Source: Oopsacas minuta (lineage: Eukaryota; Animalia; Porifera). From it: a DNA stretch of 64,000 nt. Where the stretch lies: positions 434,001 through 498,000 of the forward strand of contig JAKMXF010000144.1 in assembly GCA_024704765.1 (NCBI GenBank), read 5' to 3'. The notes beneath the pieces were generated by a model. That model was not told the DNA's origin. It ran no database searches and saw nothing but the letters and a program-made list of their open reading frames with translations. Below are positions 2,180 through 57,594 of the stretch, piece by piece; position 1 is the first letter of the stretch; every line of letters starts with the position of its first letter. Made by a program: the position numbers and the translations under genes.

Positions 2180-2401
2180 TGTGAATAAATAACAAGTGAT
2201 ATGTCTAATAGAATATGAATTAACAGTCACTACTACTAAGGACTCATGAAAATTACGACGTAATCTGGTATGTGCTTGAATATATTGGATAAAACATAAA
2301 AACAGCTGATATTACACATAAATAAGTGAGAATATTGACAGATATAATAACTTATGAGTACTGTTTGAAGTGGAAGTGTGAAGAAAAGTGAGATAGAGTG
2401 T

Positions 2402-3360
2402 TTACACGAAGGATCCTAATCTCTAAAAAGAAGTATCGTATTCCCCTGAATAAGCTCATGGGCACTTATTCTTTTCTTGGGCATTTTTTCGTCCAAATAT
2501 TCTGTCAATTTTGGAAAATACAAAATATTTGGGAAGCTAATTATTCTAATTAGTAAAATGGTCAAATGTGACGTAAATTCAAAGAAATATTCTGGATAGT
2601 GATAAAATTTAATTCACAGGTTTTGGAGCTTTTTTGAGCTCTGGCGCTTATTCAGGGAAATACGATATAAGAATTCAAATGTAAATGTTTCAAATTATGA
2701 AATAACTCACTTTTCCTCTTGGGGGATAATTTGAATCAATTCTAGAATCATAATTATGCTCGTAGGATATCTTCTCTCGCTTTTGGTTGCCACCATCTGA
2801 ACTGACACCAGGCACTATAGGGGGAAGCTAATATTATTGTGTAAAAACGAATGGCAAACTTAATATATTTCATAAGCTGATGAGCAAGTATTTATTTAAG
2901 ATTTATACATACCGATCCCTTGTGCTGGTTGCTGGGCTACACACATAGGTCTCTCAGGTCTAACCTCGCTAAAATTCGGATAATCTTGTCTCTGTGTGGA
3001 ATCCTTTGTGTATCTAGTTACAAGCTGTAATTATGGAATTTATAAAAAACTTCATTTTTGTTTACATGCGTACTTTGGTGGTGGTATTTTATCAGAGGTG
3101 TCGGGGGAGATAAGTGAAACATTTTGAGCTTTAAACTGTTGCCTGTAGTCTACTTTTTTCTGGTCCCCAACAAGAGAACAGATTGGTTGGTTAAGAAATC
3201 GAACATTTTGACAAAGAAACCCAAACTTTGATGGTTTTGAGTCTAGACTGATTTCTTTGGAATCAGATTTTATACTGCTACAGATTTTATCTCCTCTAGT
3301 GCTACTGTGTGTGGAATTATGCGAGGAGGAAAGTGATCTGGTAATAGAGTTGTCATCCAT
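2402..3360 (-). CDS. CIMIP6: C2orf73/CIMIP6-like ciliary microtubule inner protein (4 exons)
   Basis: Phase-compatible GT-AG exons 3360-3074, 3013-2913, 2814-2711 and 2422-2402 give ...NVRFLNQPIC...PPKYTKDSTQRQDY...QGIVPG...EKISYEHNYDSRIDSNYPPRGKRLGSFV*. This is colinear with remembered C2orf73 motifs (STQRSDF, GIVP, ISFIHQYDAR, GKRHGAFV). Confidence 0.7.
2436..2665. mobile_element. MITE, Tc1/mariner-pogo type, in intron 3 of the C2orf73-like gene
   Basis: Inverted termini TCGTATTCCCCTGAATAAGC / GCTTATTCAGGGAAATACGA flanked by TA on both sides; no coding capacity. Confidence 0.65.
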
Positions 3361-3494
3361 TAGTCAGTGACGAAATACTATAATTTACAAATACAAATAG
3401 CAAGTAAGCGATTTGTAAGCATTAGTTTATGAAATAAATCTGTGCCTGTAAAATAAAGAAGAATAGAAAAATAAAAAGTAGAACAAAAGAATTA

Positions 3495-6400: not shown

Positions 6401-7628
6401 CTGGTAGATTAGTTCCATCAAATGGTTTCTTTAGTTCTGCCATTTCATGGAGGATACATCCTAACGCCCATATATCACTCTTAGCATTATAAGGTTTCCC
6501 TTCACATATTTCTGGGGAAATGTAGTGAGGACTGCCGAGGGCTGTTTGAGCATGTTGTTCTGATGAATCTAACACTTTTGAAATTCCAAAGTCGCCGAGT
6601 TTAACTGTCTCTTCTAAAGTTAGGAACACATTAGCAGTTTTGAGATCACGGTGTAGAATTTTCCTAGAATGTATATATCTGACAGCTAGTGACATCTGAT
6701 GAAACATGTACAGTATCTGGTACTCAGGGATTGGTGTTTCTCTCTTTTGTATGTATTGAGCAAGAGTACCACCATCTGCATACTCCATCTCTATCATGAG
6801 ACTACCATCATCTAAATAGAAACTATCATAGTATGTGATTATATTGGGATGTTCTAGCATACTTAAAATGCTAACTTCAGAGCGAACAAGATCTTTCTCT
6901 TTCTCTAGTAAACCAATCATTGAGATCTCTTTTAGAACAACAAACATGTTATCTTCCTTCCTCCGATAGAGCACCGCAGCACCGAATGTCCCTCGGCCAA
7001 CAGTGCGTATTTTTTCAAACATCTCCAAACTGGGTACAGCTAGTCCCTGCCAATCCTTCAACTTATCGCTATCGAAGTAAAAGAAACTTATCGGCATAAC
7101 ATAGTCGTCTCCGTTTATACATAAGTTCAGTTCTTGTCCGTAGAAACTGCTTGAGGAGTAGACTTCAACTTTTAGAACTTTTTCCAGCAATTCCAATAAC
7201 TGAATACCTTCTAAACATTCAGCTACGGGGGACCCGAGGATATCTAGTCGCTTCTTTTCATTTTTAGAGTCCATATGGTCACTGACGAGATGCAAGAAGA
7301 AAGATTTGATTTCTCCTGATTTTACGGATTCCAGGGTCAGCTCCTTTTGTGTACAAAGATTGATTACACCCTTTCTACCCTGGCAGATAAGTGCGATATT
7401 CGCTGCTCTCTTGCCATTAAGAGCCTGGGTAACCATTCCTAAGATCATGTCGAGACTGGATTCATATTTATAAAGTACAGGTACTACTACATTAGGGTGT
7501 GTCATCTCGGTAAGATTCTGACAACACCTGACTCTGTTAGAAATCAGGACAAGGAGAGGAGATGATTCATTACCTAGGACTTTGTTTAGTTGGTCTTCAT
7601 GTGATATTGAAAATATAGGATGGTCCAT
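3495..7628 (-). CDS. NIMA-related Ser/Thr kinase, NEK8/NEK9-like (N-terminal extra domain, kinase, RCC1 repeats, coiled coil, C-terminal CaaX); single exon
   Basis: 1377-aa ORF with GRGTFG, VVLKEI, HRDLKTANVFL, DFGISK and GSPHYISPE; RCC1 repeats (WGSGTRGQLGHG, WGVGKDGRLGTG); ends KSGICSVM*. Confidence 0.9.
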   Translation of the reverse strand: MDHPIFSISHEDQLNKVLGNESSPLLVLISNRVRCCQNLTEMTHPNVVVPVLYKYESSLDMILGMVTQALNGKRAANIALICQGRKGVINLCTQKELTLESVKSGEIKSFFLHLVSDHMDSKNEKKRLDILGSPVAECLEGIQLLELLEKVLKVEVYSSSSFYGQELNLCINGDDYVMPISFFYFDSDKLKDWQGLAVPSLEMFEKIRTVGRGTFGAAVLYRRKEDNMFVVLKEISMIGLLEKEKDLVRSEVSILSMLEHPNIITYYDSFYLDDGSLMIEMEYADGGTLAQYIQKRETPIPEYQILYMFHQMSLAVRYIHSRKILHRDLKTANVFLTLEETVKLGDFGISKVLDSSEQHAQTALGSPHYISPEICEGKPYNAKSDIWALGCILHEMAELKKPFDGTNLPALIMKIVDCTFVPIKGDYSDGLKQLVLEMLRYDPESRPSSTQIAQEHLPQLLDSLQEKMQIEANKGNVNTYLYKFSASKLSTDPITLPDGIKVDQVSVGFSHIGLITSDKQVFMWGSGTRGQLGHGHPGSFMQPERLILHKEASIINIQCGKDFTLFLNDTGIPLSCGACDQYCLGKKTETDICVPSIIEGLITCQIVQLSCGELHAMGVTSEGEVYGWGVGKDGRLGTGTETNQFVPKEVVVVSVDNVKETIKQVVCGLDGTMFLTNSHTLYACGSNRNNKLGLNKKPTMLMTMRLFTKDQKMQVERSLIPTPVKVMTKHMVLDVSLGATHSVVLVDNGKVLAFGRKKEGQRGIVKSKGTENENKDVSCIAVSCGSIVSCCELMTVIACEEHTLQVVGSRQLFKLPLEKYLEMGGERRNESTPPHLAPSPDAPVALAIQSRDLIKGVRKLSQSGESYLSILDLSQGPNTKLVYLDLLKNCLKQLYAETEPEKSRKKPAQNSVMSMDTRIVNSLTNIPFFSEGQELSSSEIDIKQIACFGSNVVILVESAATLSSGGKQLIPQEELHNQNIKRIIRNQNRPSTGTRTVELKRVTPSLDPPPIQERTIVRNDLLLSADSTMAQWIRKEMSVPSQPWHPNIIQRSPIKCSLNDMPQAPHGEDTKGSAPTLGDSENGNINFQSIRMINAMSRKKSYQPQEDDPAMRLTPYDNFNESTDGFIQSRKQVAQSREQLIGIVKSSTDKHTIHNLALLEEKKTILSPDNCSSNVMPPITVTSALSEDSESATRKDFVSRPVKNRRRSLTEAKKLKEENLSYQQKYIQLEDKLKILERQKVESVYELEKHIQQLEHDLFDSINKVDEMKTEGENNVQKFQAESQQYLNQMKIMHQHEIINLQSEIQREKSNNLEQSNEISYLKSELQTANESLERLLRQNGKITSARVRLSKDKPPGTAPPISDIGDPAKSGICSVM

Positions 7629-7705
7629 CTTAAATTCCTAATTAGTCGAATAAATTTTACATAATATAAGTTAAATAAAAATTATCGAAAATTATCGACG
7701 AAGTA

Positions 7706-7986
7706 TTGAAAGTCGAGTGCGGATGCGGATTAAACAGAGTACTGATGCTCATTGGATTGAGTGAGCATACCTATGTGAGGAAAGTAAAATTACTAAGCAC
7801 ATGGGAAACAATTGAGCAGGGGTTAAACAGAGCAAATAGGTCAAAATTATCAATAGTTATCGAGAAAGTTGTATTTTGCTCTGCTTACCTCAGCTCAATT
7901 GTATTGCGTGTGCTCAATAATTTTTCATTCCTATATAGGTAGGAATGCTCACTCAACCTAATGAGCATCCGCACTCGACTTTTTAA
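7706..7986. mobile_element. MITE with ~45-bp imperfect TIRs in the NEK/MRPL49 divergent intergenic region
   Basis: Left TTGAAAGTCGAGTGCGGATG..CTCATTGGATTGAGTGAGCATAC mirrors right GAATGCTCACTCAACCTAATGAGCATCCGCACTCGACTTTTTAA; TA on both flanks. Confidence 0.7.
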
Positions 7987-8037
7987 TATCTCGAAAATTA
8001 TCGATAATTATGATTATTTATTTTTTCAGTTAGCCAT

Positions 8038-8496
8038 ATGTTATCTCATTCTTTGCGTAAGAACTTCATACTGACTGGTATTCTTAGGGTTTTTCTAACT
8101 AGACTGAACACTTCAGAGCCTGGGCATGTACCTTCCCAGCTTGATTATACTATAAACACAATCGATAATGACAGCCTTCCTCCCTTTACGCCCAAAACTC
8201 CATCCGGGTGGCAGCCTCCTAACCCATGTGGCCCAATTGTTAAGAACCTTCCTTTCCATATTTTTCGTTCCAGAACGAATAATCTACCAGTTTATTCGCG
8301 ATTTCGCGCGAAGGGCCCTAAAGTAAATACAGTTATTCGTAGAATAGCAGGAGATAAATCAGCGCTCGTTGCAGTCCTCGTCAGAGTATTAGGCAGTGAT
8401 CGAATAACAGAAGTAGACATCAGGGAAGGGAAGATTAATCTCAGAGGTAACAGAGTGGAGGAGATAATGAAAGTATTATATAGGATGGGATTTTGA
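8038..8496 (+). CDS. MRPL49: Mitochondrial ribosomal protein L49 (Img2 domain)
   Basis: LPFHIFRSRTNNLPVY...TVIRRIAGD...INLRGNRVEEIMKVLYRMGF* is the typical Img2/L49 signature. Confidence 0.9.
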   Translation: MLSHSLRKNFILTGILRVFLTRLNTSEPGHVPSQLDYTINTIDNDSLPPFTPKTPSGWQPPNPCGPIVKNLPFHIFRSRTNNLPVYSRFRAKGPKVNTVIRRIAGDKSALVAVLVRVLGSDRITEVDIREGKINLRGNRVEEIMKVLYRMGF

Positions 8497-8561
8497 GTTC
8501 TCTTACACGATTAATAATTACATTTTCCTTATTATAATGAATAATTCCAAATTTATATTTA

Positions 8562-8703
8562 CAGATAACTCCCATTATATCTAAGCTCAAGGGACCGTGA
8601 CAAGTACTTCCATATAAGGAGGAGTTCGTTATAACCGATGAAAATTATCTTACTTACAATTTCATAACGATATATCCGTGTTCAATGTGACAGGAGTTGA
8701 CAG
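8562..8703. mobile_element. Tigger/pogo-like MITE (CAGTCAACTCC TIR family)
   Basis: TA-CAGATAACTCCC...GGAGTTGACAG-TA; internal AGCTCAAGGGACC shared with copies near 39050 and 40610. Confidence 0.65.
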
Positions 8704-8735
8704 TATTTCTTAATATTAGCTAGATAGCGTATATA

Positions 8736-9920
8736 ATGGCGATGAAGGATTTGCTTGCTCACATAGAGAGACGTATCCCTCCAGATAAGCCAGAGAAGAA
8801 GATTGTCCATCCTAGTAAAGATGAAATATTCAAACTACCCTGTTACCCCCTGAGAGATAACATATTATCACCCAACATCCCTGAAGACAGTAAGGCTCAA
8901 TTCTCTGTTATGTCTTATAATATTTTAGCTGATTGTTATGCATATAACGCTGGTTATTGGTACTGCGACTCACTAGATACAGTAGTGAGACACGAGAGTT
9001 TAATGAAAGAGCTCTCTATACTAGGTTACGCTACTGTTCTATGTTTCCAAGAAGTTACACATAAATATTTCAGCTACCTCCTACAACCGGCTCTTACGAG
9101 TCTAGGCTATGAAGGTATCTACCAGCAGAAAGACAAGAGACATAAGAGTTCTCCTAAATCTGAAGATGGCCTAGCTATATTCTATAACAAACATAAATGT
9201 ACATTAATTTCTACACAACCTATTATACTAAATCAGTTAATGATAGAAGCATGGAAGGGAGTAGTTGGTAATGTCCGCATGGAAGATTCGTGTTACAGAG
9301 ATACTGTAGGACTGTTGACAGCGTTTTCTATTGATGGTCAGGTTGTGAGTATTGGGAATGTACATCTACATTTTGATTGGATGCGACCAGATATACAATC
9401 TCTACAAGGTTGCATGTGTTTAGGCAAATTAGTCGAATTCGCGAATTTTCACGATTCATCTGGTTATGTGTATTGTGGTGATTTCAATTCCCAGACCTTT
9501 ACAGAACTCTATACTCTGTTAACATGTGGTTATATATCAGCTGATAGTAAGCAAGCATTTCTACACCCAAGTCTATCTGTTTCTGTAAAGAAGACAGAGT
9601 TTACGAAATCTAAACCACATATGATTCCATATTTCCAAATATTTGAGAAATGTTACACAATCCCTCAAACTGTTAAGAGTGCATATTTAACAATCCAAGG
9701 GTCTGAACCTCTATACACTAATTATACAGGGGATTTCCATGGCTGTTTAGATTATATATTTTACAGTGAGGGTCTTATACCTATGAGTATACTAGCTCTA
9801 CCTGATGAGAAAGATATGAGATCTGAAGTTGCGCTGCCGAATAGTGTGATGTCATCTGATCACCTGTCACTCAAGGCTGAATTTAACATTGTGACAACAA
9901 ATAAAGACAACAAAATTTAG
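8736..9920 (+). CDS. EEP-family (CCR4/PDE12/nocturnin-like) RNA phosphodiesterase/deadenylase; single exon
   Basis: VMSYNILAD, LCFQEV, CGDFNS, YTNYTGDFHGCLDYIFY and SDHLSLKAEF catalytic motifs; no LRR. Confidence 0.88.
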   Translation: MAMKDLLAHIERRIPPDKPEKKIVHPSKDEIFKLPCYPLRDNILSPNIPEDSKAQFSVMSYNILADCYAYNAGYWYCDSLDTVVRHESLMKELSILGYATVLCFQEVTHKYFSYLLQPALTSLGYEGIYQQKDKRHKSSPKSEDGLAIFYNKHKCTLISTQPIILNQLMIEAWKGVVGNVRMEDSCYRDTVGLLTAFSIDGQVVSIGNVHLHFDWMRPDIQSLQGCMCLGKLVEFANFHDSSGYVYCGDFNSQTFTELYTLLTCGYISADSKQAFLHPSLSVSVKKTEFTKSKPHMIPYFQIFEKCYTIPQTVKSAYLTIQGSEPLYTNYTGDFHGCLDYIFYSEGLIPMSILALPDEKDMRSEVALPNSVMSSDHLSLKAEFNIVTTNKDNKI

Positions 9921-10784: not shown

Positions 10785-12722
10785 ATGAGTGAAAACATTG
10801 GAGATGTTATAAGCAAGGTCCAGACCCCTGAAGATGTTCTGTTTAAATGTTCTTCTTGTTCAGAAACAAAGAAAGATATGAAATTATTTCCCTGTTTCCA
10901 TTCGCTTTGTGAGCAATGTTACGTAATTGAAGATAACGAGCACATGGTTGTTCAATGCAAATTATGTCCTGAAAAATACTTCTCCGATGAGATCGATCCA
11001 ACGCATTTGTCTGACAACTTTTTTGCGAATGAGTACAATATGATGTTAGAAATCTTAGAAAAGTCGCGATCCGGAATTCTTTGTGAGGATTGCTGTCTTC
11101 CGAAGCCGAAAGAAGCGGAAGCTTTCTGCTTCGATTGTAACCGTTTCATGTGTCGTGCTGACATGAAGGCCCATTTAACAGTGACGCAATCGTATTGTGA
11201 CGTAGGCTTCGTGCATTTAGGTATAGACCTGCCAGATCTGAAGCTGAAGGATCCCATACAGTTAATGCATTACGTGAAGGATAGGATTATTAAGTGCTCG
11301 ACACACACCTATAGATCTGAGTACTACTGCCTTGAAGATGAGTTATGGGTTTGCAACCTCTGTAGAGCTGGGCATCATAACTCACATACATTATTTTCTG
11401 ATAAAGAAATCACTGAGAGATGGATGGATGACTTATTGAAGACCCAGGAAAAGTTCCATTATTTCGCTAACGAGAATAGCGTTAACAAGGATGAGATACG
11501 AGCTATTATGACTGAACAGAAGGAAAAGGAAAATGAGGTAGTTAGCCATATTGAAGGAGTATTCAATGAATTGATTAAAAAGATAGAAGAAAAGAAAATT
11601 AACACAATAAATGAAGCGAGGAAGAAATACGAAATGCAGTATGATGTTTTAAACGCTAAACTAGTCGCTATAGAAAGCAGCATGGAACGCATACAAACAG
11701 CTAAACAGTTCATTGATTTTTCAGTACAATTAACTGACAAACATTTCCTGAAAGAGGCCTCATTTATTCTTAGAAGTTATGGTGATGCTCTTCATTGTCA
11801 GAATCTGGAGAAGGACTACATGCCAGATGTGACAATGCGGCTACGTAAATCAATCGATGAGTATGTTGAGGACTTCTGTGTGTTGAAGGAGAATGATGCC
11901 TTGTCCGCTCCCGAAGTTTGCTTTGGCAATTTTGGGCCTGGAGTTGATCAGTTCAAAATGATCTCTGACGTTACGGTTGACAAACAGGGCCGTATCCATG
12001 TTGTAGACTCCCAAGCTTATTCCGTTAAGATCTTCACTCCCGATGGGAAGTTCTTGTCACAGGTTGGTAAACGTGGTGAGGATCAGGGCCAATTCATGCG
12101 ACCATGGGGCATATGTACTAAAGATGACTACATATACGTGTCAGACTATATCCGGCATAATGTACAGATGTTTGACATAGAGGGAAAATTCATCAAGGCA
12201 GTAGGCAAATCTGGAGTAGGAAAGAACCACTTCAAAGAGCCAAGAGGCATGGAAGCGGAGGATGAAGTGTATATCTGTGATAAACTCAACAATCGCATTC
12301 AGGTATACTCACTTAATTTAGAATTCTTGTATACACTGGGACTTGGAGTTAAGCTGAATCAACCGAGAGATATCGCAATGAGTAATCACAGTTTAGTTGT
12401 GCTATGTAGTGGAAGTCCTTGTATAAATGTTATCTTAAAAACTGACGAATTCCAATATACTTTTGGGGAGAAAGGTCCTGGACTACCGCTTAGTGACCCG
12501 TGGTTCATAGCAGCTGATGAGAATTCGTGTATTGTCACTGATACCAAAAGCAATGCTATTCTTCGCTACTCAATAAATGGAGATTTGAATTTTCATTTCA
12601 ACCGTCATGGTGATTATTCAGGTTCTATATGTCAGCCTAATGGGATATACCTTGATGCTAGAGGTATGCTGGTTATTGGGGAGAGTGGGAACTGTAGGAT
12701 CCAAGTTTTGAAACCGGTCTAA
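10785..12722 (+). CDS. TRIM-NHL protein (RING, two B-boxes, coiled coil, NHL repeats), TRIM2/3/71-like; single exon
   Basis: CSSC..PCFHSLCEQC..CKLC RING; CEDC..AFCFDC..C..H and CSTH..YYCLED..VCNLC..HH B-boxes; repeated G.G.GQF..P.GI NHL motifs. Confidence 0.9.
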   Translation: MSENIGDVISKVQTPEDVLFKCSSCSETKKDMKLFPCFHSLCEQCYVIEDNEHMVVQCKLCPEKYFSDEIDPTHLSDNFFANEYNMMLEILEKSRSGILCEDCCLPKPKEAEAFCFDCNRFMCRADMKAHLTVTQSYCDVGFVHLGIDLPDLKLKDPIQLMHYVKDRIIKCSTHTYRSEYYCLEDELWVCNLCRAGHHNSHTLFSDKEITERWMDDLLKTQEKFHYFANENSVNKDEIRAIMTEQKEKENEVVSHIEGVFNELIKKIEEKKINTINEARKKYEMQYDVLNAKLVAIESSMERIQTAKQFIDFSVQLTDKHFLKEASFILRSYGDALHCQNLEKDYMPDVTMRLRKSIDEYVEDFCVLKENDALSAPEVCFGNFGPGVDQFKMISDVTVDKQGRIHVVDSQAYSVKIFTPDGKFLSQVGKRGEDQGQFMRPWGICTKDDYIYVSDYIRHNVQMFDIEGKFIKAVGKSGVGKNHFKEPRGMEAEDEVYICDKLNNRIQVYSLNLEFLYTLGLGVKLNQPRDIAMSNHSLVVLCSGSPCINVILKTDEFQYTFGEKGPGLPLSDPWFIAADENSCIVTDTKSNAILRYSINGDLNFHFNRHGDYSGSICQPNGIYLDARGMLVIGESGNCRIQVLKPV

Positions 12723-48400: not shown

Positions 48401-49579
48401 ATGTATAACTCAGTTATAATTTACTAATTTCCTGAGGAATACTTTCTTAGATTATATTTTCCGGGTTAAGCAAATAATATACAAATCTATATTTCTCCAC
48501 AAATTTACCGTATTTATAATATTGCAGTAGACAGCTCAACACATACAATACACCACAAACTTTGACGATCTTTTGAAATAATAATTGGTCGCTCAATTGC
48601 ATTATATCATTCATTATCATAACCGATATTAACAGATAATGATGTGATACTATTCTCTGTCGCTAATTAGACAAAACTGGCTTTCAATGGAATGTTGTAA
48701 CAACCAATTACCAACTAAAGTATAATGTTTATGTAAGAGATAATTCGATTGAACTCAAAGATTGAAATCTTATACGAGACTGATACTAAACCCACACACA
48801 ATAGCGAGCCTAAAATGGACAAGATAACAAAACAATTATAATAATTATCATAATCTCAGGTAACAAAAGACAACAGAGAAGAACTATTGTCAGCATGTAC
48901 TCCAGAAGAGAAGGAGATAATGAGATTGCCCACTTTACAATCTCCTTACATACTCAACTATAGTACACAAGGAGAGATGAGATTCTCTGGGTCTGTGAGG
49001 AGTGTTTTGGAGAGCTATGTGATATCTAGAGGGATACTTACTGGTATTCTATTCAAATGTGGTGGAACCTTGCTTTATTCAGATGAGGTGAGTAGTTAGT
49101 AAATCCTTGGGGTTTCTTCAGGAGCCACCAACTTGGTTCATTTATATGCTGAATGCTCTATTTTATGCTAGGTTGCGCATCTAGTAGTAGTATGCTGTAG
49201 AGAGGATCCTATAGTGGAATTCCTACCTGACCTTCCTTCTAATTCCCCTTTCACTCCTAACCATCTGCTATTCTCTGATCACGAAGCTTCTGGGTCACAC
49301 GCCACCATTCAAATAAATTACCTCAAGAAAACAGGAAAGGAAGGTATATGGGACCATACACTGCTAGCTTTCTACCTACCAGAGGGCCAGGGGATAGTAT
49401 TGGAATCAGGACAGTATCAATGCGGTATCACTGTACACTCAAGTTGTTCTGTTAGGCCAATGGAGTGTCCAGAAGCTTCTAACGATCCCTTCAAATCCAT
49501 TTCAAAATCCCGAAATCTCGGAAAAGTGATAAAGATAATAACAGATGAAGCAGATCGTAAAAAACTCAAGAAATGGTAA
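45417..49579 (+). CDS. Uncharacterised 354-aa protein; 5 exons (45417-45445, 45499-45537, 45678-46038, 48860-49087, 49172-49579)
   Basis: All junctions are GT-AG and phase-compatible (2,2,0,0); the total of 1065 nt has no internal stop. Motifs LTHCCHVEEALRI, QWCFF, GEMRFSGSVRSVLESY, GGTLLYSDE|VAHLVVVC, WDHTLLAFY. Confidence 0.7.
46404..48194 (-). CDS. Band 4.1/EPB41-like FERM protein with FERM-adjacent domain; single-exon CDS, nested
   Basis: CCKHLHIEEVDYFSL; HFGVKYY; ALYIQSELGDYE; EMYGMHL; IGVHPHGI; WDIVTKLEAKRRKFII; IWRLAAEHHYFF; GSRFRYSGRT. The start may extend to an upstream exon. Confidence 0.88.
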   Translation of the reverse strand: MTEKYTVYFYHGTKEEFEIPRKSKIQALFDQCCKHLHIEEVDYFSLFVHDQRGKVFWLNSDKSIRKQLTPVLRDNIHFGVKYYHMDPTQVYSEETRLYFVHQVIDDIRAKHYTLSEKDLNIITALYIQSELGDYEEGTNIPGYTKDYFLFNFQSPDCEDDIVAEHKATAGRTPGQCENEILSMVKQQEMYGMHLNVGYLQVGKGQRPVQIGVHPHGITILDDEFAKLYDLPWDIVTKLEAKRRKFIIRAKGVLETETKDVVEKEEGAVPPTKEEGATNVDKDVIEAPATNEDPEQTKLSVEEALEDPPVEAASPVATENADVTTDETKQSPAHVEDPAVTEEISPAPEQPTINEEPTPKQKQVTKSKKREPITVLKFIISERTYVKDIWRLAAEHHYFFNRVPTRQPRFSFVRIGSRFRYSGRTFRQSQKDFSERKFDPIDPDVRVRMSQRRKRQSVNNDETEDSSYPGYVKARESFRRERVESGTNGDVAEKADTNEIVVENNPVEIPEPGTQEALLQKDVTDKFLDNEFQEAAKQTEGDDLPAAPSQNELIPENGDMADYPPPPKEHEEMVSGDTKVVETAVANEATPAVSNEQ

Positions 49580-49784
49580 CCCGTTCTCTTACAATTAATC
49601 ATATATTATCCAAAGACAGCAGTAATAATCACCTATTTATTTCCAAAAACATTAATATTTATATATTTTTATTTACTAGCAATGTAGCATTATACTTTCG
49701 TATTCTGAATTATTATTATTTACATAACAAAATAAACACAGTAATCTTGGTTGTTTTCTCTTTTAGATAGTCTATTCTTACCAG

Positions 49785-52700
49785 TTACTTCCCCTCGACG
49801 TATACTTTTATCTGTTTTTCTATTTTTGAGAGTTTCTCTATCAATGCTGTGCCTAGAGCCTCGTCAACTTCAAATTCAACATTTTTATCCTAAAAACAAA
49901 GATTTTAGATTTCCTGTTTAGATAGAAATCAAATTTTGGCGGAAATTCCAGGGCTAAAATATCAAAATATTTCTGAGAATATTACTTACAGTTTTCGCAT
50001 CAGGTTTCCCCAATTTAAGCTGTAGAATTCCAATTGGGTCTGTCATCTGTTCTACTGACTTAGAACGACTTTTCACATCAACTCTCCAGCTGACAGACTT
50101 TAGCTTAGTTCCCCAATGACTATTTGAAATAACTACTTCATGTATCTACAGATGAATTAATTTCCTTAATAAATATTAGGTAATATATGTGAATAAATAA
50201 ATGGCTGTAAAGAGTCCACCAATTAGCCCAGATCTACTCGCCGCATCCCTCGACATTCTTTTCCAAGATTTGATAGATCAAGAATCTAAATCAGTGTATT
50301 TTGAGTTACACAGAGCAATCAAGCTAGGCTACTACACAGCACTGTATCCCCCTACTGATCCTATTCTTAAACAAACAGCTCAATCTGTAACCACTACACC
50401 GGTAGTGGATATATTCGGACAAGGTCAAAGTGCAAAGAAAGTAGTAGATTGTATCTGTCCGCAGTGTAAACGAACATTAGCTGCTACGAGGCTTGCACCA
50501 CATCTAGAAAAATGTATGGGGATGGGAAGGAATAGCAGTCGCATAGCTAGTCGACGGATACAGGCCTCGGGGAGACAAGCTGCTATATTAGGCGATCAAG
50601 AACCTGAAAATGAGTATGAATCAGATGAATACGTACCCAATGATTCAAAAAAGCAGAAGTTTAATTCAAATCTTAAGAATAATAGAAAAATACAAAAAGA
50701 GAAAAAATAATATATTTATGATTGTAAATCTCTAGAAATTATATATATTAATATATTTATATTTTACCTCGGGGAAAGGGAATTATCATTTTTGCTATAT
50801 TTTATCTATTATTTCATGCAACTGACAGATATGTACTCTACCTTAGAAACACGGACTAGTGGTAAATCTATCCCCAGCTCATTAGGAAAACAAGTCACAG
50901 TAGTTGGCCGTGTCTCACAGCTTGGTGGTAGCAATTTGAAACTGGTAACGCATGATGACAAGACTATTACAGTAAAGTTCTCAAGCAGTAGCTCACTACC
51001 AACACAGGATAGCATCGTGGAGGTTATAGGCACTGTATTACCCGATCAAACGATACAAAGTACTGCTTATCTTATCTTTGAAGAAGACTTTGACTTAACA
51101 ATGTATGATGAAGCAATGAAACTAGTAGATAAACTGCCAATATTCAAATGAACATCATCACTTACTTTGGATCTGTTTGCCTTCCAAAAGTCTTCAATAG
51201 ATTTAGCCTCATTCTCTGTCATGGAGTTCTAGAAATTACAAAAAAGTTAATTCTATCATTTCTGTATTTATTTGCAAATAAAATCAGTAAACTCTCATTT
51301 TAACGAAGTGCTCGGGACCCCGGTTTCATTTAATTATAAGCGGAGTAAAATCGATTACTTTCTAGCTGTAGGGGGTAAGAATCACTTCGTTATAACTGGA
51401 GTTTCGTTATATCCGACTTGGTTATAACGAGAGAGTTTACTGTATTTTCAGAAAATTATTCACCAAAATAGATTGCAGATTAATAGTGAAAATAATTACT
51501 AAATCTGGGATGATTGTAGTATGAATGGGGATGACAATACCGACAACTTAGCTACTCTCCCTCAAATAACCGGTCAGACAATAACCACTACACTAACTTC
51601 ACGATATACGTCACAAAAAATCTACACTCGTATCGGCGATATCCTCATCGCACTCAATCCTTTTGAGGATTTAGACTTATACTCTGACGAGGCCATTAGT
51701 GAATATTCAACACACCCGGAGATCTATTCACTTCCCCCTCATATTTATTCCATATCACAGGATTCATTCAATTGTTTAAAGGATAAAGGTCATAATCAGT
51801 GTTGTGTGATAAGCGGAGAGAGTGGATCTGGTAAAACCGAGACAGCTAAATTACTGATGACATTTCTAAGTCATTCTTGTGAAACTCTAGTACAACATCT
51901 ACCAGAGCAATGTCATAATATGAATCCATTGATTGAAGCGTTTGGTAACGCGAAAACTGTTATGAATGCTAATTCCAGTAGATTCGGGAAATACGTGGAG
52001 TTACAGTTTACTTCAGTAGGAGAGCTAGTTGGAGCTAATATAACTGAATACCTGCTAGAGAAGAGTCGTGTCATATCACACGCTGAAGGAGAACAGAATT
52101 TTCATATTTTCTATTATCTATACGCTGGACTCACGCCTGAATACTTGAGTAAACTTAAGCTAGACATCTCAAGTAATCACCGGTATTTAGCTTCTAACAG
52201 TGTAGACACCGTGATACTCAATGACGTCACTAACCAGAAGATGTGGAGAGATAAGTTCCAGGAAATTGTGCACTGTTTTTCTACACTCGGTTTCTCCCGC
52301 GAATTATTGTTTCAAATGCTATCCATACTTATAACCATACTATACATTGGGGACATAGAGTTCGAAATGGATGAGGAAGATTACGCTGTTATAGCTAATC
52401 CGTCCTTACTGATAAAAGTAGCAGGAATCCTGGGAGTAACCACACGCAAACTAGAATATGTATTGACTACAATTGTTAATACGATAAAAGGAGGAGAGAT
52501 TATTTGTAAGAAATGTTCAGTAGATAAAGCATCAGCTCTGAGAGATGCAACGGCTAAGGCAATATATAGTCGGTTGTTTTCATGGATAATAGCTCAGATA
52601 AACGCGTCTCTAGGCAAGGACCATTGGTCAGGGAGAGTTATAAGTGTGCTGGATATATTCGGGTTCGAGAACTTTAAATCTAACTATTTTGAACAGTTAT

Positions 52701-55700
52701 GTATCGACACAGCCAACGAACAACTGCAATTCTATTTCAATCAGCATATATTCGCGTGGGAGGTTGATGAATACAAATCTGAGAATATTCCTCTTGAAAA
52801 TATAGAATTTGTAAACAATAAACACATATGTGATATGCTATTGAAACGACCAGGTGGGATATTCTCATTGCTAGATGAAGAGAGTGTATTTCCGAAGGCG
52901 AATGATCAAACATTTTTAGATAAAATAAAGACTCATTGCAAGGATAGTGAAGGAATTTTGAAATTCTCACGAGCGAATAATCTCAGCTTCAAGATTAGAC
53001 ATTTTGCGGGGGATGTCGAGTACTCTTGTCAGGATATTCTAGAGAAAAACCGCGATACTCTAAGTGACAACATAGTACAACTACTGGAGACCTGTGAACA
53101 TTATCTAATCCGCGAGTTATTCACCAAAAGCTCTCTCACTCGCATCGGCAATCTTCAAATAAAGAGCAAATATCTAAACTGCCCTAAGCGTTCACACAGT
53201 ATGAAGAAGACATGGGGTAGAGCTACTAATCGTACACATAGTATACGACAACCAATCAAGAAGAAAACGTCTAAAGTAAGTGGTAGTGGTAGCTTGATTA
53301 TCAGTGGTCCACCCCCTACAGTAGGACTAATGTTCAGGAACTCTCTGTGTGACCTAATGGAGAAAATGCTATCATGTACTCCTCATTTTATACGATGTAT
53401 TAAACCTAATCAAAGGAACTTTCCAGGAGAAGTTGATAAGGATTTTATTGAGAGACAGCTAAGAAGCACTGGTGTACTGGAAACAGTTAGAATAAGACAA
53501 TCTGGCTACTCATTCAGACCTGAATTTGCTACATTTCTAAGGAGCTACGGACAGCTGGTATTTCAATTCACTGCAAATCCTCAAGCAAATAAGGAGAACT
53601 GTAGTACTGTACTGAGGAAGCTGGGGATAGAAGATTGGATGATGGGAGAAACTAAAGTATTTCTAAAGTACTACCATTCAGCACAGCTTGATAAACTGAA
53701 TGAGAATCAACTTACGAGTATAGTAACTGTTCAGAAAATAGCTAGAAGTTATCTAGCTAGACATACCATCAAGAGGATGAAGATCAATGCTAATTGTGAA
53801 GAGACGATAATTGGGGAATTGTGTCAACAAATTGAGCGAGAGGGAGAGCAGGTAATGACAGAGCTCAATAGAGTTTGTTCTAAAGATAGTCAAGCCTTTA
53901 TCTCATTAACTTTTAGGAGTATATCTTCATTAAATATCCCAGATGTGTCTCCATGTACAACGCCAGCAGATTCTCCAGAATTGGTCTCACCCCCTCTCGA
54001 GTGTCTTATCTCCTTCCCTCCTGCTCCTTCTATTTCAGATTTATTCCATCAACTACCAGAACTCGCGGAATCTAACACGTTAGTTTCTAGCACTAGTTTT
54101 GATATTCGTACTGTCCGAGAAGCAGATGAGGAAAGATTCTCAGAATACTTTGAAGCAGAGAATCTTCCACCTAAACTACGATCTTGCAACTCATTTGGCC
54201 TTCCGTTCACTCCGGTTATTAACAAGAAAAGATTAAGCAGATACTCAGTTACACGCTCCAGCAGTAAAAATAGTTTTGATGAAGATATTCAAATAACAGA
54301 CAAGAGAAGTTTATCGGAATCTGACAGTTTTGTATCAAAACAAATAAAATCAGATAACAAAAATACAAGAATACATACCCAACCTACCCCATGTCCTTAC
54401 ACAAGGGAAAACGGAGAGATTCGTAACTGGCTCCGTATTCTATGCAGTGTAGAGCCTGTTAATAAAGTTAGCGAGTTCTTAATCTCACAACCTTCAATTA
54501 TTATTAATGGCAACAAAAACATGTTTGATCCCACAACTCTAAGCTTAGGTACTATATTAAACCCTAGGAAGAAAGGAAATGGCTATTTCGGTAAAGGCAT
54601 AGAGATATTCAGAGATATGTCTGGTGACGTGTATTGTAAGAGACTGAGTAAGAATCCTATTACATTGCTTAACTTTGAAAAGAAGAATTTCTATAGCAAA
54701 AAGTTATCCGCGTTGAATGGTGTTCTCCCCTTAAACGAATTAGTCAAATTAATCGATTTTAAGAAGTGTTGTGAGTTTGCGAATGAGGCTAGCGGATCAG
54801 GTGTTGTTGTCTTCACACCTGTCGAGACAATATGGGGACTCAAGCTCAAATTCCAATTGCACAAAAATGAAACCATGATACCTAATATTGAGATTCACTT
54901 CCTAGAGGCAATTGATTATTATAAAAAGCATTATCTGAAGCGGCCAATTGAAAGTATAGGCTCATTTACAACTGATGGTAGTATAGGCAGTGATGGAGAG
55001 AGTCAAGCGATTGAAGAAACAAATACGAGAGAAGGGGCGAGCATTTGGGTTGATATTTACCGTACACATAACAAGAAACATAATAGATCAGTACGACGCA
55101 GAAATGTATTAGAAAGCAGTGTATTTATGTCAGAGAATACAGATACTGATATATCTCACATAGAAATAGAAAAGTATATACCTCCTGAAAAGAATACCAG
55201 TATTAAATCTAAAACTCCCGTATTCAGAAGGAAAAATAAAGCTTCTAAACGAGCAGCTATCAACACACAGAGTCAAGATATAGATCAGCTACTAAGTCAC
55301 ACAGATAGCATCCTAATTGATAGTTCTACTCCTCGTCCTAAAAGCACAGAACTTGACTTAGCAGTACTTAATATCCCAGAAATAAAAATATCTAATGAAG
55401 AGGACAAGATAACATCGAAAGAGACAAGACGCCGTCCAACTGATTTACCCAGTGGGAAGATAACATATACTAGCGTAAGGAGGAGAAACCGTGAAGCAGA
55501 GAGGAATAGAATTCATGAAGGTAATTTCTCACCTGTATCCCCCTCCAGAGATGAGAACCGTCCACTACATCTACTAGCTCAGCCTAATGTACAGCAACAC
55601 TACTCCCAGTTCCATGAAGGTAACGTAACAGCTGCTCAGTTACAAAATGCTAAGATAATACAATTACATGAAGCATTCCTTCAGCAAGCTAACGAGCTTA

Positions 55701-56477
55701 CAAAGATGAAAGGAGTGATATTTTCATCAGGAATACCTAAACAGAGAATCGAACAGTCACCTCCAAACTTAGGAATGTTGACAAGGAAAAAATGGCATAA
55801 ACCAATGACAGAGAATGTAGTAGAGAAGAGACCTATTCTCTCAAGAGCAACAAAACGTGTAAATAAATTGAAATAATGTATAAATTTCTTAATTTTTTGT
55901 GTACAAATTGTATGTAATAATAATTTGTTGAATGAGCTAATATTAAACTTTTGTATAAAGTCAGTCACTGAATAGTGTTTCTTATGAAATTAGGTAACAA
56001 GAACTAAGCAGTAATTACCACCTGGCGCTATAATTGCAATTTTATTTAACAGCCACAAATGAGTGGGTAGCCAAATGGAAATGTGGTTCAAAGCTTTTGG
56101 TTGTTGCAGTGTTGATTACTTTTAGCTGAGTAGGTTGTAATATTGTATAATACATGTAGAATTAGGTATTTGACCTGTCTCTTATTCTTCTGTGAAGTGA
56201 GGTAAGCAGTCAATTGAGTAAAATCCATATCCACACTGACTAGTGCTTGTAATACACCTGTGTATCTCTTCTTGAATGCTTCATAATCTACCAACACACG
56301 CATGCTGTAGGTTATTTGACCAAAATTATCAAACATAAAGTTTAAAGAATAAAACTAACTGGTAGATCCTAGCTGGTTGGCATATTCCTCCATTTCTTGA
56401 GTCTCCTCATTATCATCGTACAATACTTTACTCAGTTCTGTCAGATATACTGCCAGCACATCTCCCTTCTCTGCCAT
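49785..56477 (-). CDS. COMMD1: COMM domain-containing protein 1; 5 exons (56477-56360, 56287-56175, 51228-51166, 50145-49990, 49889-49785), 184 aa
   Basis: The spliced 555-nt frame reads MAEKGDVL...TGVLQALVSVDMDFTQLTAYLTSQ..|..IEDFWKANRSK|IHEVVISNSHWGTKLKSVSWRVDVKSRSK...PIGILQLKLG..|DKNVEFEVDE...KLSKIEKQI. This is colinear with COMMD1 (SADMDFNQLEAFLTAQ, KFWK, LSWRVDGKSQSR). All junctions are GT-AG. Confidence 0.9.
50201..50710 (+). CDS. ATXN7L3: Ataxin-7-like 3 / SAGA DUB subunit SGF11; nested in COMMD1 intron 3
   Basis: FELHRAIKLG; DIFGQ; CICPQCKRTLAATRLAPHLEKCMGMGRNSSRIASRRI zinc finger. Confidence 0.93.
   Translation: MAVKSPPISPDLLAASLDILFQDLIDQESKSVYFELHRAIKLGYYTALYPPTDPILKQTAQSVTTTPVVDIFGQGQSAKKVVDCICPQCKRTLAATRLAPHLEKCMGMGRNSSRIASRRIQASGRQAAILGDQEPENEYESDEYVPNDSKKQKFNSNLKNNRKIQKEKK
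50831..51151 (+). CDS. RPA3: Replication protein A 14-kDa subunit; nested in COMMD1 intron 3
   Basis: OB-fold pattern GKQVTVVGRV...IVEVIGTV...FDLTMYDEAMKL; an alternative ATG lies at 50816. Confidence 0.85.
   Translation: MYSTLETRTSGKSIPSSLGKQVTVVGRVSQLGGSNLKLVTHDDKTITVKFSSSSSLPTQDSIVEVIGTVLPDQTIQSTAYLIFEEDFDLTMYDEAMKLVDKLPIFK
51285..51442. mobile_element. Tigger/pogo-like MITE immediately upstream of the myosin ATG
   Basis: CAGTAAACTCTCATTTTAACGAA...GTTATAACGAGAGAGTTTACTG-TA inverted termini. Confidence 0.7.
51521..55876 (+). CDS. Unconventional myosin (class III-like head without kinase, one IQ) with MH2-like tail domain; single exon, nested in COMMD1 intron 2
   Basis: GESGSGKT P-loop, NANSSRFGK switch I, DIFGFE switch II, PHFIRCIKPN; IQ-like VQKIARSYLAR; MH2-like segment at ~54425-54920. 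Confidence 0.92.
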   Translation: MNGDDNTDNLATLPQITGQTITTTLTSRYTSQKIYTRIGDILIALNPFEDLDLYSDEAISEYSTHPEIYSLPPHIYSISQDSFNCLKDKGHNQCCVISGESGSGKTETAKLLMTFLSHSCETLVQHLPEQCHNMNPLIEAFGNAKTVMNANSSRFGKYVELQFTSVGELVGANITEYLLEKSRVISHAEGEQNFHIFYYLYAGLTPEYLSKLKLDISSNHRYLASNSVDTVILNDVTNQKMWRDKFQEIVHCFSTLGFSRELLFQMLSILITILYIGDIEFEMDEEDYAVIANPSLLIKVAGILGVTTRKLEYVLTTIVNTIKGGEIICKKCSVDKASALRDATAKAIYSRLFSWIIAQINASLGKDHWSGRVISVLDIFGFENFKSNYFEQLCIDTANEQLQFYFNQHIFAWEVDEYKSENIPLENIEFVNNKHICDMLLKRPGGIFSLLDEESVFPKANDQTFLDKIKTHCKDSEGILKFSRANNLSFKIRHFAGDVEYSCQDILEKNRDTLSDNIVQLLETCEHYLIRELFTKSSLTRIGNLQIKSKYLNCPKRSHSMKKTWGRATNRTHSIRQPIKKKTSKVSGSGSLIISGPPPTVGLMFRNSLCDLMEKMLSCTPHFIRCIKPNQRNFPGEVDKDFIERQLRSTGVLETVRIRQSGYSFRPEFATFLRSYGQLVFQFTANPQANKENCSTVLRKLGIEDWMMGETKVFLKYYHSAQLDKLNENQLTSIVTVQKIARSYLARHTIKRMKINANCEETIIGELCQQIEREGEQVMTELNRVCSKDSQAFISLTFRSISSLNIPDVSPCTTPADSPELVSPPLECLISFPPAPSISDLFHQLPELAESNTLVSSTSFDIRTVREADEERFSEYFEAENLPPKLRSCNSFGLPFTPVINKKRLSRYSVTRSSSKNSFDEDIQITDKRSLSESDSFVSKQIKSDNKNTRIHTQPTPCPYTRENGEIRNWLRILCSVEPVNKVSEFLISQPSIIINGNKNMFDPTTLSLGTILNPRKKGNGYFGKGIEIFRDMSGDVYCKRLSKNPITLLNFEKKNFYSKKLSALNGVLPLNELVKLIDFKKCCEFANEASGSGVVVFTPVETIWGLKLKFQLHKNETMIPNIEIHFLEAIDYYKKHYLKRPIESIGSFTTDGSIGSDGESQAIEETNTREGASIWVDIYRTHNKKHNRSVRRRNVLESSVFMSENTDTDISHIEIEKYIPPEKNTSIKSKTPVFRRKNKASKRAAINTQSQDIDQLLSHTDSILIDSSTPRPKSTELDLAVLNIPEIKISNEEDKITSKETRRRPTDLPSGKITYTSVRRRNREAERNRIHEGNFSPVSPSRDENRPLHLLAQPNVQQHYSQFHEGNVTAAQLQNAKIIQLHEAFLQQANELTKMKGVIFSSGIPKQRIEQSPPNLGMLTRKKWHKPMTENVVEKRPILSRATKRVNKLK

Positions 56478-56665
56478 ATTTTACTATATCTAATGTTGGA
56501 ATTATTACAATTTAGGTTTCACCTGAATGAACTGCTGTGAACTTTGGCCGAAGTCGGAAAAAATTTCTAAATTTCTATGACAGAAGTGCAAGTTCTTACA
56601 TAAATCTAGGAGGTGAGAACTATTAGTTATATTTATTTATAGCTATTCTCTTTTATTTATTAATA

Positions 56666-57165: not shown

Positions 57166-57594
57166 TTAATATCCAGCAATCATAGCATATAATGTAAAAT
57201 AAAGATAAATAAAAAACACACAGAGATGATAACCTAGCTTGATAAACGTATCTCTAGTCGCAGTATACAGATTACCCCTATTTCTAATCTCAGTGGGGTC
57301 ATACATACCCATAGCATCTTTGGGTAATTTAACAAATCTGTATATTAGAAAACCAGAAAACGGAGCTGCAAATATGATAAACAATACGTAATGCCATGAT
57401 AGAAGTAGAAATATAGAGATAACACAATGTGATACTATCTCTGGGATAACGAATCTATTCAATCTTTGACAACATGCCTTACTGTTAAGATAATCACACT
57501 CTAGGTCAGATAACATTATCACAAAGTATACTGTAAGGAATAGGAGACATGTTGTTATCACGAGACATAGCAGGAATATTATGGGGTCTGGCAT
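57166..57594 (-). CDS. CNIH4: Cornichon family cargo receptor (CNIH4-like); single exon
   Basis: VYFVIMLSDLECDYLNSKACCQRLN..VIPE; YDPTEI.NRG; FIKLGYHL..FFIYLY. Confidence 0.92.
   Translation of the reverse strand: MPDPIIFLLCLVITTCLLFLTVYFVIMLSDLECDYLNSKACCQRLNRFVIPEIVSHCVISIFLLLSWHYVLFIIFAAPFSGFLIYRFVKLPKDAMGMYDPTEIRNRGNLYTATRDTFIKLGYHLCVFFIYLYFTLYAMIAGY

Follow-up and report, generated by a model that had tools for sequence, protein, structure and literature searches.

A five-exon COMMD1 gene with three opposite-strand genes nested in two of its introns in the sponge Oopsacas minuta

Nested genes are frequent in sponge genomes, where counts cover Aphrocallistes vastus, Amphimedon queenslandica and Sycon ciliatum, with 2432 cases reported for A. 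vastus (PMC10282587). The locus described here resembles these published cases in most respects, since the guests are complete and mostly single-exon genes lying in the introns of an unrelated host within a compact genome, the layout is kept between related sponges, and the host is of the kind often missed or split by automatic annotation. However, it differs from them in its proportions (i.e., the COMMD1 host coding sequence, 555 nt, amounts to about one tenth of the ~5.2 kb of nested coding sequence) and in that two guests closely flank a 63-nt host exon. A second comparison (PMC5989421) is offered by mouse Commd1 (Murr1), whose first intron contains the imprinted Zrsr1 (U2af1-rs1). The mouse and sponge cases share the host family, an opposite-strand intronic coding gene and host transcription that crosses the guest, whereas the mouse arrangement has an independent rodent origin, concerns intron 1, involves one guest and includes an imprinting-regulated promoter; no link between the two is implied. 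The combination of COMMD1 with the myosin-MH2/RPA3/ATXN7L3 set was not found in the literature, in searches that did not query the gene names together, and neither the genome paper of Oopsacas minuta nor its supplements mention COMMD, RPA3 or ATXN7L3.

Within the window (the whole 64,000-nucleotide stretch of contig JAKMXF010000144.1 that was analysed), splicing of the five predicted minus-strand exons yields an in-frame COMMD1, and we reproduced the coordinates, phases and product given in the preliminary description (Table 1). The ends of RNA contigs put the exon 2 acceptor at 56287, thus giving a coding sequence of 555 nt and a protein of 184 aa. An alternative acceptor at 56304 (ctacag) was rejected, as it breaks the reading frame when joined to the exon 1 donor (GTTAGT) and the contig ends of the RNA-like run X4 show 56287 instead.

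Table 1. Coordinates (in the window) of the COMMD1 exons and introns, the nested genes and the repeat.
Feature	Position	Strand	Details
COMMD1 exon 1	56360..56477	-	ATG at 56477; 118 nt; phase 1 end; donor GTTAGT; homologous exons in L001 and L006
COMMD1 intron 1	56288..56359	-	72 nt, phase 1; RNA contig junction 56360>56287
COMMD1 exon 2	56175..56287	-	113 nt; COMMD1_N domain; weak donor CAG/GTCAAA; 92% aa identity to L001
COMMD1 intron 2	51229..56174	-	4946 nt, phase 0; hosts myosin; X4 contig skips exactly 4946 nt
COMMD1 exon 3	51166..51228	-	63 nt (21 codons); in phase 0 on either side; both flanking junctions on one X4 contig
COMMD1 intron 3	50146..51165	-	1020 nt, phase 0; hosts RPA3 and ATXN7L3; X4 loose end 51166 leads to 50145..50116
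COMMD1 exon 4	49990..50145	-	156 nt; COMM domain core
COMMD1 intron 4	49890..49989	-	100 nt, phase 0; GTAAGT...TAG; predicted from sequence
COMMD1 exon 5	49785..49889	-	34 codons + TAA; 74% aa identity to L006 exon; kept in L001
Nested gene 1: myosin, intronless, with MH2-like tail	51521..55876	+	1451 aa; Myosin_head 1e-192, MH2 1e-4
Nested gene 2: RPA3	50831..51151	+	106 aa from conserved ATG 50831; Rep_fac-A_3 4.6e-16; upstream ATG 50816
Nested gene 3: ATXN7L3 / Sgf11	50201..50710	+	169 aa; Sgf11 1.5e-14
Dispersed repeat in intron 2, upstream of myosin ATG	51285..51434		X1/X2 depth 2-3x flanks; many different loose ends

The identity of the host was addressed by database searches made exon by exon, the whole protein being compared by alignment only. 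Indeed, exon 2 alone matches the COMMD1-specific N-terminal helical domain (Pfam COMMD1_N, PF17221; 28.4 bits, E 2.2e-6, cut-off 23.4) and exon 4 alone matches the COMM domain (Pfam COMM_domain, PF07258; 35.4 bits, E 1.2e-8, cut-off 22.4). Against PDB, exon 4 finds human COMMD1 best (3e-7), the next paralogue being COMMD9 (6.6e-4). In addition, residues 1-180 of the spliced protein align at E 8e-40 with a protein that bears the name COMMD1-like, as expected from the identity first proposed, and the top full-length matches share 34-39% of their residues. Taken together, the PDB results for exon 4 and the full-length alignment place the predicted protein nearer to COMMD1 than to the nine other COMMD paralogues. 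Like human and other vertebrate-type COMMD1 (PDB 8F2R, 8F2U, 8P0W; ~185-190 aa, from three coding exons), it combines an N-terminal helical domain with a C-terminal COMM domain; exon 4 and the best-matching vertebrate-type fragments share ~45-50% identity, and a 105-residue partial alignment to the vertebrate-type protein P0021 gives 44% identity. Judged by its sequence, the locus is an ordinary functional COMMD1, a Commander complex subunit by sequence membership.

The junctions are supported by Logan contigs from a single sample, which are unstranded and for which the run type was guessed. The assembled contigs of X4 carry the joints 56360>56287, 56175>51228 and 51166>50145, so that both of the long-intron junctions predicted beforehand are present, and no splice joints occur in the DNA-like runs X1 and X2. 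The contig with the intron 2 joint (51228>56175) has a depth of 1783; the skipped interval has the ends CT..AC, i.e., GT..AG on the minus strand, and the shorter side of the joint is just 21 letters. The intron 2 donor, which had been pointed out as atypical, is weak, yet used. The acceptor of intron 3 is placed from loose-end sequence only, namely a loose end of 137 letters at 51166; its 30-letter consensus is identical to 50116-50145, where exon 4 starts. The loose ends at 56287 and 56356 lead to the intron 1 junction, the 56287 end corresponding to 56360-56372. The read comparison covered 6000 letters, which lie outside exons 4 and 5 and intron 4. Over this range, the depth in X4 is uneven and RNA-like (390 to 3408), as against a flat ~80-130 in X1 and X2 except at the repeat, of which no second copy exists within the window. 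By gene, these unstranded contigs reach at most 3408 for RPA3, ~2500 for the COMMD1 exons, ~500 for the myosin and ~390 for ATXN7L3, with ~198 in the spacer 51300-51499. Note that the myosin depth (~420-640 along the length of the ORF) could come partly from unspliced host RNA.

The three guest ORFs lie wholly inside host introns whose donors and acceptors are seen in use in the X4 contigs. They are complete, with full-length Pfam matches, and display 68-85% amino acid identity to their counterparts in the related assembly L001; the ATXN7L3 ORF has homologues named ATXN7L3 or SAGA-associated factor 11. ORFs and Pfam agree with the earlier placement of an intronless 1451-aa myosin in the ~4.9-kb intron 2 and of both ATXN7L3 and RPA3 in the ~1-kb intron 3. 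The reported gaps are exact: 14 nt separate the RPA3 stop (51151) from exon 3 (51166), and 55 nt separate exon 4 (50145) from the ATXN7L3 ATG (50201). On the 3′ side of RPA3, the first AATAAA stands at 51277, past exon 3. Behind the ATXN7L3 stop, neither AATAAA nor ATTAAA is present, and acceptor-like sites precede the nested ATGs, for example ttttcag at about 51445-51451. It would be a reasonable inference from this spacing that guest UTRs and promoters overlap COMMD1 exons.

The same COMMD1 layout, with guests in the same introns, was found in two related assemblies (L001 and L006), which retain every one of the five exons together with phases and splice sites, including a homologous 63-nt exon 3. 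As an example, L001 displays the same five exons separated by GT..AG introns of 121, 4998, 1091 and 120 nt; its introns 2 and 3 likewise contain the myosin, RPA3 and Sgf11, and Cornichon, ELO and FERM are neighbours there as in the window. L006 shows the same arrangement, with ATXN7L3 75% and the myosin 57% identical, and its intron 4 (~2.2 kb) contains an NHL-repeat gene. COMMD1 of the window and of L001 share 77% of their amino acids (dN/dS 0.15, dS ~0.8), and the nested genes show pN of 0.09-0.20 with saturated synonymous sites. The kept layout, the low dN/dS of the host and synonymous sites near or beyond saturation together indicate that the arrangement is old and selected, with an age known in relative terms only. 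Farther away, no COMMD1, RPA3 or ATXN7L3 was found within 10 kb of the Corticium candelabrum myosin-MH2 locus, nor any partner gene within 10 kb of a more distant ATXN7L3 locus (L007). No contigs are on record for the sequences encoding P0061, P0059, P0033, P0118 (Geodia barretti ATXN7L3) and P0245 (Dysidea avara myosin), and a homologue search with the full-length COMMD1 P0061 returned 4 matches, with no named sponge COMMD1 among them.

Our preferred reading, to which we give a probability of roughly 0.9, is that of a functional, cis-spliced five-exon COMMD1 whose pre-existing phase-0 introns 2 and 3 took in opposite-strand genes. In an ancestor of this sponge clade, each of the two old introns would have acquired its guests, intron 2 gaining the myosin with its MH2-like tail and intron 3 gaining ATXN7L3/Sgf11 and, behind it on the plus strand, RPA3, possibly by retroposition or small rearrangement. 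The spliceosome would excise the 4.9-kb and 1.0-kb introns, guests included, and the guests would most likely be transcribed independently from the opposite strand. The 3′ end of RPA3 would most likely cross COMMD1 exon 3 in antisense orientation, and the promoter region of ATXN7L3 would most likely abut exon 4. Concerning the route of entry, the myosin forms a single ORF here, whereas its Corticium candelabrum orthologue (myosin-MH2) is split into at least 18 exon pieces spread across 30 kb. However, the non-nested neighbours Cornichon, ELO and FERM are also single prokaryote-style ORF calls in L001 and L006, so that general intron loss accounts for the intronless myosin as well as a retrogene origin does. 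Since synonymous sites are saturated between the relatives, a poly(A) remnant or target-site duplications are not expected to survive.

It is possible, although unlikely, that the tight interleaving is itself functional or that COMMD1 is a recurrent landing site for genes. Under the former, transcriptional interference or sense-antisense RNA could couple the four genes; in three diverged species, exon 3 and the RPA3 stop are 14, 11 and 32 nt apart, which would make the 3′ end of RPA3 obligately antisense to a COMMD1 coding exon. The idea of a landing site rests on the three guests here, on the further (NHL-repeat) gene that L006 carries in intron 4 and on the independent case of Zrsr1 in mouse.

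The preliminary description suggested that the two gene-bearing introns may be lineage-specific and possibly created by the insertions, in which case the inserted genes would have split a continuous COMMD1 exon and recruited splice sites. Vertebrate-type COMMD1 does possess one uninterrupted exon over this region, as the preliminary description states for exon 2 of the human gene and as seen in the three-exon gene of L005 and the ORF fragments P0012/P0014. It lacks introns 2 and 3, its first intron lies ~12 codons further downstream, and its last intron falls nearly at the place of sponge intron 4. All three nested species have, moreover, a weak intron 2 donor (GTCAAA, GTCTAT and GTTCGA). Nevertheless, two further animal lineages known from metagenome assemblies, L002, which bears the label sponge metagenome, and L003/L004, have gene-free, GT..AG introns 2 and 3 in phase 0 at identical codons, of 71 and 54 nt in L002 and of 57 and 80 nt in L003. 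The shared sites lie after ...KKRQ (intron 2) and after ...FWKxxKTK (intron 3), and L003 also has intron 1 at the matching position and phase. In ~10 further genomic ORF fragments, exon 4 starts at the same place, after an in-frame CAG, and P0060 has the intron 2 acceptor at the matching position. The short versions of intron 2 have non-consensus donors too (GTGCAC and GTGAAC), so the weakness belongs to the intron itself rather than to an insertion. As empty introns stand at the same codons and in the same phase in other animals, the genes entered existing introns, and an origin of introns 2 and 3 by insertion becomes very improbable; this part of the preliminary description does not hold.

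An equally improbable reading would have the mature mRNA trans-spliced from two or three separate transcripts (exons 1-2, exon 3 and exons 4-5). Leader sequences are predicted on 4% of long reads in the glass sponge A. vastus (PMC10282587), and contigs as such do not distinguish cis from trans. However, the pieces follow one another in order on a single strand, within 6.7 kb, and have canonical GT..AG ends, the relatives with introns of 54-80 nt at the same sites must use cis-splicing, and no sign of separate promoters appears before exon 3 or exon 4. Least credible of all is that the pieces are relic exons of a dead gene broken by insertions and without functional protein, for although COMMD1 is not called by gene callers and no full-length model exceeds 51% identity among 1.84 billion representative proteins, high-depth (~1800-2500) spliced contigs connect the exons in frame and the related assemblies keep every exon, phase and splice site at the dN/dS given above.

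Altogether, the layout is real and conserved, and it is an ordinary case of the nesting already published as common in sponges; it changes nothing known about nested genes or about COMMD1. A full-length COMMD1 model seems to be absent from the public protein sets for this clade, seemingly because other genes lie between its exons, and hosts hidden in this way should be looked for before gene loss is claimed for a compact sponge genome. In addition, the order of nesting is unusually clear, running from old introns of 54-80 nt in other lineages to introns of 1.0 and 4.9 kb with whole genes, and L006 has since added one more gene, in intron 4. The main value of the locus thus lies in annotation and in a clean evolutionary example.

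The split COMMD1 gene is confirmed and its gene model is right: the spliced frame comprises 555 nt (184 codons plus TAA) in five short minus-strand exons (table below), and the 184-aa length given in the preliminary description was reproduced exactly with an exon 2 acceptor at 56287. Another acceptor for this exon, at 56304, was rejected since it breaks the frame and the RNA data place the acceptor at 56287. Intron 1 is in phase 1 and introns 2, 3 and 4 are in phase 0, and all four have GT..AG ends, with the donors GTTAGT, GTCAAA (weak), GTAAGT and GTAAGT in order.

COMMD1 exons and the genes nested in its introns (window positions)
Feature	Position	Strand	Length	Location and Pfam match
COMMD1 exon 1	56477-56360	-	118 nt	
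COMMD1 exon 2	56287-56175	-	113 nt	
Myosin	51521-55876	+	1451 aa	intron 2 (56174-51229, 4946 nt); Myosin_head 1e-192, weak MH2
COMMD1 exon 3	51228-51166	-	63 nt	
RPA3	50831-51151	+	106 aa from conserved ATG	intron 3; Rep_fac-A_3 4.6e-16
ATXN7L3/Sgf11	50201-50710	+	169 aa	intron 3 (51165-50146, 1020 nt); Sgf11 1.5e-14
COMMD1 exon 4	50145-49990	-	156 nt	
COMMD1 exon 5	49889-49785	-	105 nt	

The identity of the host gene was supported by protein comparison, as residues 1-180 of the spliced product align with a COMMD1-like protein of Elysia marginata (34% identity, E 8e-40), and further full-length COMMD1 proteins also align with it. By itself, exon 2 is recognised above the Pfam threshold as the COMMD1-specific N-terminal domain (PF17221, 2.2e-6), and so is exon 4 as the COMM domain (PF07258, 1.2e-8); among solved structures, human COMMD1 is nearest to exon 4 (3e-7), followed by the paralogue COMMD9 (6.6e-4). 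When exon 4 was searched against 1.84 billion representative proteins, no full-length COMMD1 above 51% identity was found, and a 61-aa exon-sized ORF matched at 74%, which lies on L001, a contig of a related assembly. The COMMD1 of relatives occurs in this protein set as exon-sized ORF fragments only, and public protein sets seem to lack a model of this gene for the clade.

Four runs from one sample cover the locus, and their contigs, which are assembled and unstranded and whose run type (RNA or DNA) was guessed, were compared over 50500-56499. Runs X1 and X2 are DNA-like, with flat depth (78-130) except at a repeat at ~51300-51500, and contain no splice joints over 50500-56499. Depth in the RNA-like run X4 is very uneven (390 on ATXN7L3, up to 3408 on RPA3, ~500 on the myosin and ~2500 on COMMD1 exons 1-2). 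One X4 contig (depth 1783) links 51228 to 56175 and skips 4946 nt with CT..AC ends, i.e., minus-strand GT..AG, the shorter side of the joint being 21 letters; it continues for 137 letters past 51166, where a 30-letter consensus exactly matches 50116-50145, with which exon 4 begins. Both junctions around the nested genes (56175>51228 and 51166>50145) are therefore present in X4, and 56360>56287 is given by two further loose ends of this run, so that three of the four COMMD1 junctions, those of the introns that reach into the compared region (1, 2 and 3), occur in RNA-like contigs. In addition, run X5 (labelled as a different organism, B) provided low-depth contigs 95-99% like the myosin over 51686-55865, with a 6-nt deletion at 53279; it probably comes from a diverged population or from a sister species.

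As claimed beforehand, introns 2 and 3 hold three complete genes, each a single ORF with a Pfam match (table), and the proposed spacings proved exact (14 nt from the RPA3 stop to exon 3 and 55 nt from exon 4 to the ATXN7L3 ATG). The former distance is 14, 11 and 32 nt in three species (the window, L001 and L006, the last two from related assemblies). The first AATAAA past the RPA3 stop is located at 51277, beyond exon 3, which suggests that the RPA3 3′ end most likely runs antisense across this exon. Neither AATAAA nor ATTAAA was found in the 400 nt scanned downstream of the ATXN7L3 stop, and RPA3 begins ~120 nt downstream of this stop on the same strand; the two genes may share a common transcript, or an unusual 3′ signal may be in use. 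In X4, RPA3 has about five to nine times the depth of ATXN7L3, which argues for an RPA3 start of its own. A dispersed repeat (51285-51434) separates COMMD1 exon 3 from the myosin ATG; on it, the DNA-like runs reach 2-3 times the flank depth with many different flanking sequences; no second copy was found within the window.

The nearest named orthologues of the nested genes are distant (Geodia barretti ATXN7L3, 54% identity; Corticium and Dysidea myosins, 42%). In the precomputed Pfam list, ATXN7L3 of this clade carries solely the Sgf11 zinc-finger family (PF08209), and most other animal homologues additionally carry PF27759 (ATXN7L3B-like N-terminal region). The combination of Myosin_head and MH2 is not peculiar to this genome, as precomputed Pfam matches give both for ‘myosin-III-like’ proteins of Corticium candelabrum, Dysidea avara, hemichordates, echinoderms, Lingula, Owenia and a chiton.

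The same layout was found in the relatives. L001, an ENA assembly contig of 1.16 Mb, has the same five COMMD1 exons, with introns of 121, 4998, 1091 and 120 nt. Intron 2 contains the myosin-MH2 gene and intron 3 contains RPA3 and Sgf11, and the flanks match those in the window, with Cornichon and ELO at one end and a FERM gene at the other. L006 is more diverged (ATXN7L3 75% and myosin 57% identical) and retains this layout; its intron 4 is enlarged from ~100 nt to ~2.2 kb (7364-9548) and hosts an opposite-strand NHL-repeat/six-bladed beta-propeller gene (ORFs 7553-8290 and 8229-8804; NHL 3.9e-12). This fourth guest is absent from COMMD1 of the window and L001, and its nearest counterpart in the window is a distant paralogue (27% identical) at 12168-12686. 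Microsynteny is collinear in three related assemblies (ELO, Cornichon, COMMD1 with its guests, a conserved gene at ~48850-49580, FERM and Peptidase_C48), including window positions 57166-57594 and beyond. When the window is compared with L001, COMMD1 shows 77% identity and a dN/dS of 0.15 (dS ~0.8), and the nested genes show 68-85% identity, their synonymous sites being saturated; this pattern indicates purifying selection on the host and all guests, and an old arrangement.

The preliminary description had suggested that introns 2 and 3 were possibly lineage-specific and created by the insertions. The uninterrupted exon that it described for this region was indeed seen in L005 (an NCBI chromosome with a three-exon vertebrate-type COMMD1) and in vertebrate-type fragments, which have only an intron near intron 4 in common with the window. 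However, an origin by insertion is refuted by contigs whose COMMD1 (~40-55% identical) lacks the guests: L002 (from a record labelled sponge metagenome) and L003/L004 have GT..AG phase-0 introns at exactly the same codons, after ...KKRQ (intron 2) and ...FWKxxKTK (intron 3), and these are gene-free and short (71 and 54 nt in L002; 57 and 80 nt in L003). The phase-1 intron 1 is common to L003 and the window, and L002 is devoid of it. In about ten more genomic ORF fragments, exon 4 opens at the residue where it does in the window and is preceded by an in-frame CAG, as expected of a phase-0 acceptor; one of the fragments (P0060) starts likewise at the intron 2 position. The intron 2 donor, noted earlier as atypical, is weak, but it is not an insertion scar, since the short versions also have weak donors (GTGCAC and GTGAAC). 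The simplest history starts with introns 2 and 3 as old, short introns, which then captured whole genes in the common ancestor of the window, L001 and L006.

Whatever the route, the guests must have entered on two separate occasions, since exon 3 sits between RPA3 and the myosin. In the homoscleromorph sponge Corticium candelabrum, the orthologous myosin-MH2 gene is divided into at least 18 exon pieces that extend over 30 kb (L008, 10001-40083) among unrelated neighbours, and COMMD1, RPA3 and ATXN7L3 are all absent up to a distance of 10 kb; the partner genes are likewise missing at a distant ATXN7L3 locus (L007). The intronless guests are compatible with retroposition of processed mRNAs, but a general loss of introns, as in a compact genome, accounts for them as well, because non-nested neighbours also appear as single ORFs.

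Nested genes have been published as common in sponges: the glass sponge Aphrocallistes vastus has 2432 of them (12.4% of its genes), Amphimedon has 3358 and Sycon 5032. Many of these genes are conserved, and they are frequently overlooked by annotation programs (PMC10282587). In Drosophila, ~6% of genes are intronic (PMC3786989). Mouse COMMD1 also hosts a gene, the imprinted Zrsr1, on the opposite strand of intron 1 (PMC5989421), an event independent of the sponge nesting in introns 2 and 3. Altogether, the COMMD1 locus is a fresh and tidy example of well-known gene nesting. Its practical value is a warning for annotation and gene-loss claims, and it provides a clear example of gene capture enlarging old small introns.
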